Positions 9,678 to 16,024 of a stretch of DNA of 64,000 nt are shown here, one piece after another. The notes under the pieces are model-generated. The model made no database searches and had not been told where the DNA came from. It worked only from the letters and a program-made list of their open reading frames with translations. Each line of letters starts with the position of its first letter. Position 1 is the first letter of the stretch. A program made the position numbers and the translations under genes. Origin of the DNA: Macrostomum lignano (lineage: Eukaryota); NCBI GenBank assembly GCA_002269645.1, contig NIVC01000413.1:248001-312000 (forward strand), in the 5' to 3' direction.

Positions 9678-10965
9678 TCACCAGGAGCCTTCGGTGCAGC
9701 GGTAGCGCGGTCCAATGTGACCAAAATACCGGCAGCGGTATCCGGGGCAGCAGGCCTCCTCGGTGGGATAAAAATCTCCGCATTTATTGCCAAGGCAGTC
9801 TTCGACAGGTTGGCTGAAATGTCAGGCAATTTAAAAAGTTTAATCTACTAAACCACAGTAAACTCTTCTTAACTTTTTTAACATTGACAACGAATGCGCC
9901 CATGCTTGAGATAGATAATAAAATCGATTTAGTTTTGTAGGATCACAGTTATGTCTCTATTTGGGATTGATTTTACCTACCTAAACTTCAAAAAGCTTCA
10001 AAACTAAAAAATATTTACGTACCTAAACTTTAATGGAGGCTTGGTAAGCTTAATAGAAAATTATATAACCATTTTATGTTTACCTCTATCCTACTAACTA
10101 TGAACAAATTTTTGTTTGAGTATGGCCTCAGATTGCAGAATACATGTAGTTCCGGGGATTGGAATTCCCGGGGTTCAAAACCTGCTATTTTCAACAGCTT
10201 GTAAAGTATAAATTACGATTACTACTACTACGGTACTACTACTACTACTACTGCTACTACTACTACAAATACTACTACTACTACTACTACTACTACTACT
10301 ACTACTACTACTACTACTACTACTACTACTGCTACTACTACTACAAATACTACTACTACTACTACTACTACTACTACTACTACTACTACTACTACTACTA
10401 CTACTACTACTACTACTACTACTACTACTACTACTACTACTACTACTACTACTACTACTACTACTACTACTACTACTACTACTACTACTACTACTACTAC
10501 TACTACTACTACTACTATCACTACTACTTCTACTACTACTACTACTACTACTACTATCACTACTACTACTACTACTACTACTACTACTACTACTACTACT
10601 ACTATCACTATTACTACTACTACTACTACTACTACTACTACTACTACTATCACTACTACTACTACTACTACTACTACTATACTACTACTACTACTTGGGA
10701 TAGCGATACACAAGTGAGCACACCACAAGAGACCGTGAGGCACTCCGGACACTGTAAGATATAGCTATAGTTTTGCATTTTCTGCACAGTTACAGCATCG
10801 TAAAATACTTCAAGAAAGTATCGTGGCTCTGCCGAGCTTGTATTTCTAAATTATAAATTGCACTTACCTATTTTGAAGTATTGATGCCTTGTCTGAAGGA
10901 ATGATCAGTGAGTCAATTGTGCAGATATGAACCAGCAGTAACAAGAGTAAAAAGAAGCAGATCAT
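9678..10965 (-). CDS. Secreted inhibitor-cystine-knot (knottin)-like peptide K1, 77 aa; exons 10965-10868 and 9813-9678
   Basis: Protein MICFFLLLLLLVHICTIDSLIIPSDKASILQN-S-QPVEDCLGNKCGDFYPTEEACCPGYRCRYFGHIGPRYRCTEGSW*. AG|GTAAGT donor and CTGACATTTCAG| acceptor are both phase 2. Cys spacing C-x4-C-x9-CC-x4-C-x11-C. ATTAAA lies about 25 nt after the stop. Confidence 0.82.
10220..10695. repeat. (TAC)n microsatellite, about 475 bp, inside the K1 intron
   Basis: Near-pure TAC run. The adjacent GC-richer segment 10696-10760 may be the 3' end of a minus-strand retroelement whose tail expanded (inference). Confidence 0.97.
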
Positions 10966-12555
10966 ATTAGCGAGAGAATATGTTAGTTAATGAATCTGTA
11001 AATTTAATGCACTTTCTGATTGCTTGTAATCAAAATCAGAGCGCATACACAAATGAAGCTATTGCTAATTGCTCTTCTATGAAAAATATTTTGATAAAAT
11101 TAATTATTCAAAGAACGTTGCGTTATGCACATGTAGTTATTAAGCCTTTTTGCGAATTTAATCGACTTTGAGTCGGATGGATATTCCTCTGCTCAGGATG
11201 TCTATGGCCTAAAGGGCCCTCGGGTCCTTTGCAACATCACAATAGTCAATAGTAACCACAGATAGGTTTGTGTCTCTTCTCATCTGTCTTATCTCTAATA
11301 ATCTCCTCTCTCTTTTTCTTTCATCTCCTCTCTACTCTCCTCTCCCTTATCATCTCCTCCTCTCCTCTTCTCTCTTCTCTTCTCCACATCCTCTCTCTAC
11401 CTTCCTCTGACCAGAAGTCATGTGATAGGTTCTCTATCTGGCCCTTGATGCACGAGAAACAAAAGTTTGTCGTCTGTCTGGGTCAATATGGTCAATGGCC
11501 TTGATTGAAGTTATGCTGCAGCTGCACAAATCTGCTTAGAAAAGTTATAACTTCTATAACTATTTGACTTTCACTGCGTCCAGTTTTGTGCTTTGCAAGG
11601 AACCCAGCAGAATTCATATTCACCCTGCAGACTGAGAATTGAAATCACTAGGCAATTTGGTTTATGTCACGAACATTCACTGTCTCTTTCTCTGTCCAAC
11701 AGACAACAGATTTTAGCGCATGGTTCTCTCTCTACGCCATTCTTTACTTTAGCCATGCCATCCAGCTGTGGCCAAAATTAATCTCTGTTGTCTATGGCCT
11801 TTCTATGGTTTGTCTGTGTCAGATCTTTGCCACGCTACCACGTCACACTGCTGACAGTCAGGCGCCGATTTGAATAAAGAAAATGTAGAGGTTTAATTCA
11901 TAGAATTCTACTGCAAGTAGAGCAACGCACACATGCGCACCAAAACTTGAACTATGAATAATGTTATAGCGAAGAAATGAATCATAATCACTATTTACAA
12001 CAAAAAACGAGTCATGTTACTATTTATAACGAGAAGAGGAGTCATATTACCTTTTATAGCGAAAAGATGAGTCATTATATTTCACAAAAATTGCCTATAA
12101 ATACAAACGCAAAATCCGAGCTGAAATCTCAGACGTTTGGAGCAGCCTCAAAGCATCTTGAGCTAACGGGAGAAGCTAATCGAGGCTACATCTCTGAGGA
12201 AGACGAATACCGTTCGGTAAGCCCTTGTTCGAGCCTTTGTTATTAGATTGATTGAGAGCGATTTTATTGCCGGCCGTTACTAATCAGTTGATTCCACTGA
12301 GTTTATTGCGTTTGAGGCCTCCCCTTTTCCTAAGGATATTGAGGATATTAAGGGGATCCTCAATAGGATCTGCGGACCGATTCCGATACCCTTAGAGAAT
12401 TCTCGATTGATTGATTTGGATTACCCAAGAGTAACCGATAGGAGCTGCACACGACTCCGATTTCGTTATTTCTACGAGTAAAAGAAGACGCCTCTTTTTG
12501 GAGGACCTCGTCATTGTTATAGAAAGTTGACTTTGTTATTAGGGCGCATCGTTGA

Positions 12556-12888
12556 TATTGATTTCTGCACTCGAGGAATATATTGATTTCTGCACTCGAG
12601 GAATATATTGATTTCTGCACTCGAGGAATATATTGATTTCTGCACTCGAGGAATATATTGATTTCTGCACTCGAGGAATATATTGGATTTCTGCACTCGA
12701 GGAATATATTGGATTTCTGCACTCGAGGAATATATTGGATTTCTGCACTCGAGGAATATATTGGATTTCTGCACTCGAGGAATATATTGGATTTCTTAAC
12801 TCGAGGAATATATTGATTTCTGCACTCGAGGAATATATTGGATTTCTGCACTCGAGGAATATATTGGATTTCTGCACTCGAGGAATAC
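12556..12888. repeat. 25-26-bp minisatellite (TATTGATTTCTGCACTCGAGGAATA)
   Basis: About 13 tandem units. Confidence 0.93.
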
Positions 12889-14409: not shown

Positions 14410-14894
14410 TTCAGACACTGACAGAAGCGGACGTTCAGCAAAAGATTGAGGAGACCTCGACAACAAGAAGGAAGGCAGAATGGGCAATCCAAATCTTCCG
14501 AGATTGGCACAACGAGAAAAAGCATCTTTGGGCCACAGGCGGTAGTCCATCTCTAATGGTTTTAAACGACGTGGACAAAATGTCAAAAAGTGAGCAAACC
14601 AGAGTCTTCGCAAAACCTGCGCCACCCGACTACATGAAGCTGGTGTACAGCGTGCGGACATGTCGCGTGACTAGAAATTCCAGTTCCGCTGTGGAGAGAT
14701 ACATCGGTGTATCTGTGCCAATGCAGAAGAACATGAGTGCAATTGTTGCCGGAGTTTCACCGGCTGGAGAGAAGGCTGCTGATTCGCGCAACGAGCTACC
14801 AGAGCAGACTGCGAGCCTCGAGATGTCAATGAAGAAGAGGATGCGGATTGAAACGAATGGCGACACCAACACTGTTTCTTTCTACTTCGACTGA
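14410..14894 (+). pseudogene. YR1: internally deleted Crypton-type (DUF3504-like) tyrosine recombinase
   Basis: The N-terminal block FQTLTEADVQQKIEE...AEWAIQIFRDW joins directly to SLRKTCATRLHEAG (shifted frame) and ...SAVERY. The core catalytic region is missing. The C-terminus RIETNGDTNTVSFYFD resembles that of YR3. Confidence 0.75.
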
Positions 14895-15697
14895 CAAGTT
14901 TCATGATATGTTTCCGGATGTATGGAATGATTCGGACAGACGGACTGACTGGCTTTTTAAATTTATTATTTTTCTTCTCTTCTAATGTTTTTGCTGTTCT
15001 GCACTAGCTGATTTCACGGCCCGGCCGTGAAATATTTCCTGGCCTGGCCATTACATACCATATAGACACTGGACTGAGCTAAATTGGGGTTTAAATAGTT
15101 TTGCATATTCTGACAAATTTAAAATCATTTTTGACGATTCCGAATTTGAAATGTTAGGAGCTTTAATAACTGCCAAAACACTTTGAATGTTTATGAAATC
15201 CTTTAAATGTCTTTGGGGCGGTTGTAATGTATCTCCATATCTATTTTAAAAGGAATCATATTTTGTACTTATTTCTCACTGTATTATTTGTATTTCATAT
15301 TTGTATTCTGTTTCTGCATTTACTTTACTTTTTAGTGTATGTACTCGTATTTATATAATTTTGCATAATTGTTCTATAATGTAGTTTGTTTTATTGCTCA
15401 ATGTAACTAATATATAATAAATATCGCTCGTAAGAGTTCGCCGCGCGCTGATTTGGCATTTTCGACTGATCGTGATAATTCAAGTGACAGTCCTCGGCAT
15501 TCATTTTATTATACGGTAAGAATTCAGATAAATGCTAAACTTAAATCACGACCGACGGCATACCACCGCATAGTTGTGACCATAGAATACGAGTACAACT
15601 AAATTGTAAATAAAGTTCAAGAAATTAGCGATCCAAGATATTTGCAAAATTTTGAGGTCAGAATTTGATTTGTTGCTAATTTGTCAGACTGTCAACA

Positions 15698-16024
15698 ATG
15701 CGACTAAATACGACTGTAATAGTTTTAGTTTTTCTGTCAGAAGCAGTTCAACTTTCACGATGTAGTTCAGCAGAGTCTGTCACAACAGCCGAATCGAACA
15801 GAACAAAAATGTGGTTAGTGCGCAAACCAAGGTCAGGATTTTAACAAACTTTTTCTTTTAGTTATTTTCCTTTTTCACAGTGATTTTTCTGTTTTAGGTA
15901 CGCTGCAAGATGCTTGGAACGGTACGAAATTTGCGCTACAATACCCGAAGGACTCATCGGTGCTTGCTGCCCAGAATTAATTTGTCAACGTTTCTCAAAT
16001 TTCTACTGGGCTTGCTCTGTTTGA
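15698..16024 (+). CDS. Secreted inhibitor-cystine-knot (knottin)-like prepropeptide K2, 86 aa; exons 15698-15831 and 15898-16024
   Basis: Protein MRLNTTVIVLVFLSEAVQLSRCSSAESVTTAESNRTKMWLVRKP-R-YAARCLERYEICATIPEGLIGACCPELICQRFSNFYWACSV*. A 66-nt phase-2 GT-AG intron follows a long polypyrimidine-rich acceptor region. Cys spacing C-x6-C-x10-CC-x4-C-x9-C. Confidence 0.82.

Follow-up and report, generated by a model that had tools for sequence, protein, structure and literature searches.

A cluster of three genes for predicted secreted knottins in flatworm DNA: conserved knots behind changeable leaders

Knottins are widely used scaffolds in ion-channel pharmacology and peptide engineering, and their origins outside arthropods and molluscs are poorly charted. 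The DNA considered is a 64,000-nucleotide stretch, referred to here as the window, in which two genes for small cysteine-rich peptides, K1 and K2, had been described from the letters alone as a divergent, fast-evolving pair of knottin genes inside a transposon nest. What kind of genes are these, how many of them are there, and do their products change quickly? The answer preferred here, to which a probability of about 0.6 is given as a whole, is that the source is Macrostomum lignano or a very close relative (strain or species), and that the locus is a cluster of three paralogs of tandem origin (K1, K3, and K2), which encode small secretory prepropeptides, each with a predicted knottin domain and with knots that are conserved.

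The K1 and K2 gene models were reassembled by script from the raw window sequence, and K3 was assembled after its strand had been read (Table 1). The architecture first proposed for K1 and K2 was recovered in full. Each has two exons, a phase-2 intron before the mature domain, and the loop CC-P-x3-C (CCPGYRC in K1 and CCPELIC in K2), and the two start codons lie head-to-head with 4,733 bp between them (given originally as 4.7 kb). The genes are otherwise little alike, as had been stated: when the paralog alignment is confined to the cores from Cys I to Cys VI, K1 and K2 are 28% identical, nearly all of the identities are cysteines, and the rest is barely alignable. They do not form a pair, since a third gene, K3, lies between them on the minus strand. 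A six-frame scan of the window for the C-C-CC-C-C framework returned three matches, the third of which (13264..13365, minus strand) is K3. In 200 windows simulated under a Markov-1 model, 0.1 matches were expected, and none of the 200 reached three. All three matches in the window lie within 6.3 kb, and each follows a phase-2 AG acceptor and is closed by a stop codon 1–5 codons past Cys VI.

The predicted products have 77 (K1, MICFFLLLLLLVHICTIDSLIIPSDKASILQNSQPVEDCLGNKCGDFYPTEEACCPGYRCRYFGHIGPRYRCTEGSW), 80 (K2, MRLNTTVIVLVFLSEAVQLSRCSSAESVTTAESNRTKMWYAARCLERYEICATIPEGLIGACCPELICQRFSNFYWACSV), and 92 amino acids (K3, MHFRCILAIGESLFAIQLLSVSADGRTDVPSTFNPADESLPHVQPWPPGWPGYSVEECAGLGQLCGPRWYGYKSCCTGKCTLAIVRGLPICY). 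All three introns are in phase 2, and they end 16 (K1), 13 (K2), and 4 (K3) nucleotides before the codon for Cys I. The knot spacing is C-x4-C-x9-CC-x4-C-x11-C in K1, C-x6-C-x10-CC-x4-C-x9-C in K2, and C-x6-C-x9-CC-x3-C-x10-C in K3. The hydropathy maximum of each precursor falls within the first ~20 residues, as for a signal peptide (in K1, it is 3.62, at residues 4–12), and the three signal peptides show no evident mutual similarity by eye. The net charge of the core is +1 in K1, −2 in K2, and +4 in K3. Aromatic residues are abundant in all three knots, and the K2 knot is also hydrophobic. The clustering of the genes within 6.3 kb, taken together with their common cysteine framework and common intron phase, makes an old tandem duplication the best reading. 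The conclusion that K1, K2, and K3 are paralogs with a common gene architecture but little common sequence is thus supported.

Table 1. Positions in the window of the three genes and of two rearranged segments; the last three rows give positions in the metagenome sequences named.
Feature	Position	Strand	Remarks
K1 exon 2	9678..9813	minus	1 base closes the split codon, then QPVED, the knot, TEGSW, and stop
K1 intron	9814..10867	minus	1054 nucleotides, GT..AG, phase 2; holds a (TAC)158 microsatellite at 10220-10695
K1 exon 1	10868..10965	minus	start codon, signal peptide MICFFLLLLLLVHIC..., short linker
K3 exon 2	13258..13369	minus	encodes E-ECAGLGQLCGPRWYGYKSCCTGKCTLAIVRGLPICY and the stop codon
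K3 intron	13370..13650	minus	281 nucleotides, GTGAGA..AG, phase 2
K3 exon 1	13651..13817	minus	start codon, signal peptide MHFRCILAIGESLFAIQLLSVSA, Pro/Trp-rich propeptide
K2 exon 1	15698..15813	plus	start codon, signal peptide MRLNTTVIVLVFLSEAVQLS..., propeptide
K2 intron	15814..15897	plus	84 nucleotides, GTTAGT..AG, phase 2
K2 exon 2	15898..16024	plus	1 base closes the split codon, then YAAR, the knot, SV, and stop
Copy-specific insertion	14051..15514	plus	degenerate Crypton-like C-terminal open reading frame at 14424-14894; 111-nucleotide hairpin at the left end, 14068-14178
Inverted segment with K2	15514..16195		opposite orientation relative to the two other copies
Metagenome knottin-repeat reading frame, L003	10001-11188
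Metagenome knottin-repeat reading frame, L004	7436-8623
Metagenome knottin-repeat reading frame, L005	3346-4533

Two further copies of the locus, L001 (NIVC01000271.1) and L002 (NIVC01003548.1), are found in the public M. lignano assembly. Each is ~93% identical to the window DNA, and each contains all three genes, so that the window is taken as a third, diverged copy of the locus. That there are three of them agrees with the redundancy on record for the DV1 genome (PMC5730564). No reading frame or splice site of the genes is disrupted in any of the three. The K1 intron has 1054 nucleotides in the window, 981 in L001, and 1220 in L002, and the length of its microsatellite varies; the K2 intron is kept in L001, with 86 nucleotides. 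L001 and L002 are themselves 99.1–99.4% identical, except in a ~3-kb block at 93% (L001 10271-13086, L002 10029-13077), which starts in the microsatellite of the K1 intron and covers K1 exon 2, where its coding differences are K to N, E to V, and S to F. This block could have originated as a haplotype mosaic, by gene conversion, or as an assembly chimera.

The public record of the three genes is uneven. Over its full length, the K1 product matches the M. lignano hypothetical protein PAA86623.1 (BOX15_Mlig029002g1) at 100% identity, and its 90% cluster holds one further protein, PAA50864.1 (g2), which represents a second allele or a paralog. No counterpart of K2 or K3 was found in a word-indexed search of 5.8 billion proteins, in which K1 matched only itself. 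The Mlig_3_7 annotation has its basis in RNA-seq-guided transcript assemblies (PMC5730564), and its K1 exon boundaries are exactly those of the rebuilt model. At the position of K3 there is a public model of 56 amino acids (L001 7043-7490, L002 6569-7016, window 13817-13258), which contains the exact K3 intron (L001 7128-7404) in the wrong frame. This model was reproduced as 85 plus 86 nucleotides; it begins at an internal ATG, and the true precursor of 92/93 amino acids is missing from protein databases. Since annotated models use the K1 and K3 junctions, both junctions have indirect transcript support, and K3 is mis-annotated. The public annotation thus misses two genes out of three (K2 is absent and K3 is in the wrong frame), which makes it likely that the annotation of this genome falls short for small cysteine-rich peptide genes.

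The fold of the six-cysteine domains was approached by modeling. AlphaFold2 gave a predicted local distance difference test (pLDDT) score of 94.3 for the K2 core, from an alignment of three sequences, and 77.5 for K1. When the models were compared with the PDB by Foldseek, the top matches were mostly knottin-type mini-proteins, with template modeling (TM) scores of 0.5–0.7. They include fungal CBM1, the sponge asteropsins, agelenin, psalmotoxin, mu-agatoxin, Magi4, tachystatin B, and the sea-anemone peptide Ms11a, and the top matches of K1 also include IGF-binding-protein and Dickkopf domains. In sequence, the best PDB matches are weak and sub-threshold, and all three are inhibitor cystine knot (ICK) toxins: mu-TRTX-Pre1a for K1 (E = 0.075), muO-conotoxin MfVIA for K2 (E = 0.65), and omega-Tbo-IT1 for K3 (E = 0.33). 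A profile search of the PDB returned nothing. The idea of a secreted knottin family was thus borne out in part. Assignment to the secreted-knottin class is well supported by the N-terminal hydrophobic segment, the six-cysteine domain, and predicted folds nearest to knottins, whereas membership in any named sequence family is not supported. K1–K3 resemble the animal ICK peptides known from spiders, cone snails, sea anemones, horseshoe crabs, and sponges in their six-cysteine C-C-CC-C-C domain of 35–39 residues and in being made as secretory prepropeptides. They differ in that their source is a free-living flatworm and that no venom apparatus or activity is linked to them.

It had been suggested that a system of this kind may be undescribed in such an animal. 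This is not supported, since UPF0506, a platyhelminth-specific knottin-fold family, is already known from Schistosoma and from the secretome of Schistocephalus solidus (PMC8400842). UPF0506 proteins are, like K1–K3, secreted, cysteine-rich, and found in flatworms only, and their first half-motif, C-x6-C-x7-CC-x4-C-x9-C, is near the spacing of K2 (PMC8400842). In S. solidus, however, they carry a double motif of 12 cysteines (PMC8400842), while K1, K3, and K2 have one six-cysteine module each. Membership of K1–K3 in UPF0506 was considered and rejected, as they have no Pfam match and lack the 12-cysteine double motif, and the UPF0506 proteins of parasitic flatworms were not recovered by the K1–K3 profile search.

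That search, made with a profile of the three cysteine cores against 1.84 billion representative proteins, found K1 itself and six unnamed metagenome proteins (P0002–P0007), which were the best matches (E from 4e-13 to 8.5e-5). No further single-domain relative was found among the 1.84 billion proteins at E ≤ 0.001, the 36-column profile being of low sensitivity. P0002–P0007 are secreted proteins with 3–9 tandem knottin-like domains (CAxxGQxCG..EGQ..CCxGYxC...GAPGxC), encoded by single intronless open reading frames (ORFs) on AT-rich contigs (33–35% GC) of JGI, ENA, and Logan environmental assemblies. Their repeat unit has the spacing C-x6-C-x9-CC-x4-C-x13-C, and the string CAxLGQxCG...CCxGxxC is common to it and K3. 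Against a profile of 47 metagenome domains, K3 scored 24.7 bits, compared with 1.6 ± 4.0 for loop-shuffled decoys. Kinship with these proteins is a lead only, because the significance arises from summed repeats and because the proteins had been selected by similarity beforehand.

In open-access papers, no description of Macrostomum knottins was found, and searches on planarian ICK peptides, toxins, or knottins found only papers on venomics and spider toxins. K1–K3 add a modest new example to a peptide type that is well known, and as a knottin family they are new for the Macrostomum literature. With them, a free-living flatworm open to genetic work is seen to have at least three knottin genes that are conserved and probably expressed.

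The claim that these genes are fast-evolving was examined by Nei-Gojobori counts between the window and L001, with the mature exons and the signal plus pro regions each pooled. The mature exons differ by 9 synonymous changes and 1 nonsynonymous change, with a synonymous rate (dS) of 0.121, a nonsynonymous rate (dN) of 0.004, and thus a dN/dS of ~0.03. By gene, the synonymous and nonsynonymous counts are 0 and 0 in K1, 7 and 1 in K2, and 2 and 0 in K3, whose mature peptide is identical in the window, L001, and L002. With 22% synonymous sites, 9 synonymous changes out of 10 depart from neutrality at a binomial P of 1e-5. The signal and pro regions, by comparison, differ by ~6.5 synonymous and ~14.5 nonsynonymous changes (dS 0.071, dN 0.052), which is nearly neutral, and the two kinds of region are distinct by Fisher's test (P = 0.002–0.006). 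Introns and flanks diverge by 2–8% between the same two copies. The excess of synonymous changes in the mature exons points to purifying selection and leaves the claim of fast evolution unsupported. Selection of this kind holds the knots, and the leaders are under almost no constraint.

This pattern is the reverse of the classic signature of conotoxins and spider toxins, in which the signal is conserved and the mature peptide is hypervariable. The deep divergence of K1, K2, and K3 reflects age rather than present rapid evolution. A common scaffold with little common sequence need not mean that peptides change quickly; they may be old, with each of them constrained.

A number of points weigh against the reading of the locus as a cluster of conserved secreted-knottin genes. 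The test of selection is built on few substitutions, and L002 shows 3 nonsynonymous changes and no synonymous change in K1 exon 2, which makes the constraint on K1 less clear; these changes are still below the expectation from the flanks (Poisson P = 0.018), and pooling over the three copies gives 9 synonymous and 4 nonsynonymous changes in the mature exons (P = 4e-4). The signal peptides were assessed by hydropathy alone. In the window, Glu stands in the hydrophobic core of the signals of K2 (residues 14–15) and K3 (residue 11), where L001 has Ala; the swaps relative to the other copies are LSEAV for LLAAV in K2 and GES for GAS in K3, and these Glu-bearing leaders may be a degeneration in a redundant copy of the locus. 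Neither public copy has an annotated transcript for K2, and the gene identifier of K1, Mlig029002, was absent from literature full text and from supplements to four M. lignano papers. No sequence match to a known knottin is significant, with E ≥ 0.075 throughout, and the Foldseek E values are all above 0.1 (≥ 0.29), as is usual for queries of 35–45 residues. With the full precursors and the mature domains as queries, hmmscan matched no Pfam-A family even when the cut-off was relaxed to E ≤ 10, the spider-toxin models Toxin_12 and Toxin_7 included. Finally, the inverted orientation of K2 in the window, described below, could stem from an error in one assembly or the other.

Several other explanations of the locus have to be weighed. 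One is that K1 and K2 belong to a toxin family that diversifies rapidly under positive selection, its loops hypervariable on a fixed cysteine scaffold, and that serves in venom or chemical defense. It would account for paralogs that have almost only cysteines in common, for weak best matches among spider and cone-snail neurotoxins, and for the three nonsynonymous changes in K1 exon 2 of L002. The selection results run counter to it, as dN/dS is ~0.03 in the mature exons and the fast part of each precursor is the signal and pro regions and not the knot; moreover, the three signals show no evident kinship. There is also no sign of a recent burst of paralogs, with three genes in 64 kb and no single-domain relative in the low-sensitivity profile search. 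A toxin family of this kind is considered unlikely.

What the peptides do would depend on where they go and what they meet. Exon 1 supplies the signal peptide and a short linker or propeptide, and exon 2, after the phase-2 intron, supplies the 35–39-residue domain with the predicted inhibitor cystine knot. In the proposed course of events, the precursor would enter the endoplasmic reticulum and lose its signal peptide, and the K2 propeptide would probably be cut after the Arg directly before Cys I. Three disulfides would then lock the knot, and a stable peptide would be released from secretory cells. Outside the cell, it would probably act by binding to a protein, for instance an ion channel or a receptor. 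The three genes parted long ago, and what they still have in common is the scaffold, the phase of the intron, and a small number of residues. The conservation of each peptide fits a stable target. Typical antimicrobial peptides are strongly cationic, and none of the three knots is. The aromatic-rich, weakly charged surfaces of these knots most likely suit channel or receptor ligands better than cationic, membrane-active antimicrobials, and the hydrophobic and aromatic character of K2 may resemble that of gating-modifier toxins. The biological role would probably fall among defense or prey handling, immunity, and signaling, with a target that may lie in predators or prey, in microbes or parasites, or in the worm itself.

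Two of these roles amount to explanations of their own. The first is that the genes encode host-defense knottins, antimicrobial or antiparasitic, which act in mucus or epidermis on microbial membranes or on channels of parasites. Tachystatin B is among the structural matches of K1, the K3 core is cationic at +4, and Mytilus CRP-I has the same cysteine framework and a phase-2 intron (PMC4558851). Against this, K1 and K2 are not cationic, CRP-I displayed no significant antimicrobial activity (PMC10138031), and the locus shows no presence/absence variation, with three genes in each of three copies. Host defense is rated as low in probability as the toxin family.

The second, which is slightly less probable again, is that K1–K3 are endogenous signaling or reproductive peptides, such as seminal-fluid, prostate-gland, or neuropeptide-like ligands. 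Strong conservation of the mature peptides fits a fixed endogenous receptor, and M. lignano has many small secreted proteins related to reproduction. On the other side, no amidation or dibasic processing signals stand beside K1 or K3, and the K1 identifier does not appear in the supplementary files of a study of reproduction genes (PMC5816591), the listed content of which was not checked.

A further possibility concerns descent rather than role. Because the best PDB match of K2 is an O1-superfamily conotoxin, the K2 leader was compared with O1 precursors of Conus, five of which were confirmed by exact look-up, and a HMMER profile was built from 10 verified O1 precursors. Without gaps from Met1, the K2 signal (window 15698-15763; L001 5703-5768) and the omega-type O1 signal are identical at 10 of 22 positions for the window copy and at 11 of 22 for L001. 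Nine other signal peptides had 1–5 identities with the O1 signal, and the signals of K1 and K3 are not O1-like. Shuffling of the hydrophobic region alone gave P ~1e-4 for the K2 identity, in a comparison that was post hoc and had nine control signals. When K2 was set against an O1 alignment by hhalign, the probability was 43% (P = 2.6e-4) over 65 columns, from Met1 past Cys V. Shuffling of the mature loops of K2 left this score undiminished; the signal peptide alone carries the likeness, and the loops add nothing beyond the cysteines. In addition, Cys I of K2 is immediately preceded by Arg, a feature of omega-conotoxin precursors too, and the motif CCPxLIC is common to K2 and muO-conotoxin MfVIA.

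Gene structure offers a second line of comparison. In most Conus superfamilies, the mature-toxin exon is preceded by a phase-2 intron, and the three-exon gene of the O1 superfamily has, besides this, a phase-1 intron after the signal (PMC3862624). In Mytilus, MgCRP-I has the same cysteine framework and a phase-2 intron, with 10 nucleotides of the pro-region on the last exon (PMC4558851). Mytilus CRP-I and the Conus O-superfamily thus resemble the K genes in the C-C-CC-C-C framework, a phase-2 intron close upstream, and clustered paralogs. Unlike the molluscan genes, which have two introns, the K genes have one intron and no phase-1 intron, with exon 1 unbroken from the ATG to the donor site. 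Their paralogs also lack a common signal sequence, and their mature peptides are conserved, not hypervariable.

These likenesses raise the question of whether the K genes, and K2 especially, belong to the same spiralian prepropeptide lineage as Conus O1 and CRP-I, which would be compatible with the cluster of conserved knottin genes preferred here. The signal identities, the hhalign result, the Arg before Cys I, the motif in common with the best PDB match, and the phase-2 intron before the mature exon (PMC3862624, PMC4558851) all speak for deep homology. The O1 profile in HMMER does not, as K2 scored 7.6–8.8 bits, which is in the range of unrelated knottin precursors. Pfam, which includes the conotoxin O-superfamily precursor model PF02950, has no match for K2; the likeness is carried by the signal peptide alone, no phase-1 intron interrupts the signal region of the K genes, and the comparison was picked after the fact. 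The split between flatworms and molluscs is very ancient. As the prepro region of K2 changes fast between copies of the locus, retention of its signal since that split is implausible, which counts against homology with O1. Deep homology is improbable, and still more so than an endogenous role. The related proposal that K1–K3 are the first recognized flatworm lineage of single-domain ICK prepropeptide genes, with an ancestry common to the conotoxin O-superfamily and CRP-I class, is likewise improbable. K2 as an outright member of the O1 conotoxin superfamily was rejected, given the unremarkable HMMER score, the lack of a Pfam match, the hhalign probability of only 43%, and the absent phase-1 intron. 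Were common descent true, the "conotoxin-type" gene would be an ancient spiralian invention and not a conoidean novelty, and M. lignano, in which transgenesis is tractable, would be a laboratory model for the making and the original role of such peptides. Common descent would then bear on the origin of conotoxin genes; at present, it is a lead alone.

The last explanation, that repeat-rich DNA has here thrown up ORFs by chance or holds pseudogenes in decay, and that nothing functional is made from them, draws on the unannotated state of K2, the repeats of the region, and the Glu in the signal cores of K2 and K3 in the window, but it is largely refuted and highly improbable in view of frames and splice sites intact in three independent copies, the synonymous excess in the mature exons, three framework matches where 0.1 were expected, and the RNA-seq-based models for K1 and the K3 intron.

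K1 and K2 are divergent in the window, and the other copies give a different picture of how the genes are arranged in general. In both L001 and L002 the order is K2-K3-K1, on one strand and head-to-tail, so that the head-to-head arrangement in the window is most simply a derived, copy-specific inversion. By sensitive alignment, the inverted segment comprises K2 and ~184 bp upstream of it; L001 5337-6747 aligns to the window in the +/+ sense, and both of its flanks align in the +/− sense. The 1.46-kb insertion, which is absent from L001 and L002, adjoins the inversion. Near the breakpoints, there are only weak inverted repeats of 41 nucleotides at 80% identity (15116-15156 and 16181-16221). To judge from these alignments, a segment of ~0.7 kb with K2 was probably inverted beside a Crypton-like insertion, and the ancestral order was probably head-to-tail.

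The Crypton remnant reported between the genes is weakly supported. The degenerate ORF in the insertion is colinear with the last ~100 amino acids of a local Crypton-like ORF, from the motif VERYI, which is the catalytic-tyrosine motif at the start of the alignment, to ...NGDTN..F.F[DE]-stop. Its Smith-Waterman score is 63, compared with 30.8 ± 5.2 for shuffled sequences (z ~6), and 1 of 500 shuffles reached it. On the other hand, the remnant gave no match by tblastn against the local Crypton ORF, and none by Pfam, in which no integrase hit was obtained. The local Crypton-like ORF itself, of 326 amino acids at 31789-32769 on the minus strand, looks intact and matches the Pfam models Phage_integrase (E = 2.6e-7) and DUF3504. 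A second such ORF, at 28857-29591 on the minus strand, is 42% identical to it. At 6690-7322 on the plus strand lies a remnant of a mariner/Tc1-type DDE transposase (Pfam DDE_3 and Transposase_1).

The repeats reported between K1 and K2 are present. Besides the (TAC)158 microsatellite, the interval contains an array of 26 nucleotides ×13 at 12555-12887 and one of 30 nucleotides ×3.7 at 11964-12075. Comparison of the interval with the rest of the window gave just one weak repeat pair (11192-11332 and 13470-13602, ~140 bp, 66% identity). One transposon-derived remnant is demonstrable between the genes, and the remainder consists of tandem repeats and this weak pair; the term "transposon nest" is therefore overstated.

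Some smaller observations concern these repeats and the rest of the window. The two members of the ~140-bp pair have the same orientation, one lying upstream of the K1 start codon and the other inside the K3 intron; they may represent a short interspersed element, or else what is left of an ancestral duplication unit. The 26-nucleotide array sits between K1 and K3 and is very regular, and its copy number differs in L001 and L002. Directly downstream of K1, at 8838-9380, there is a satellite of 20 nucleotides with a higher-order unit of 121 nucleotides. Two ORFs at some distance from the cluster, 47354-47881 and 57956-59017, both on the plus strand and ~10 kb apart, share the N-terminal motif ...DKA[LY]VEF..C..S[IM]L.LI.FP..., which is followed by a transmembrane segment, and they are probably paralogous membrane proteins. 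The second of them has a repeat tail rich in Q, D, and S.

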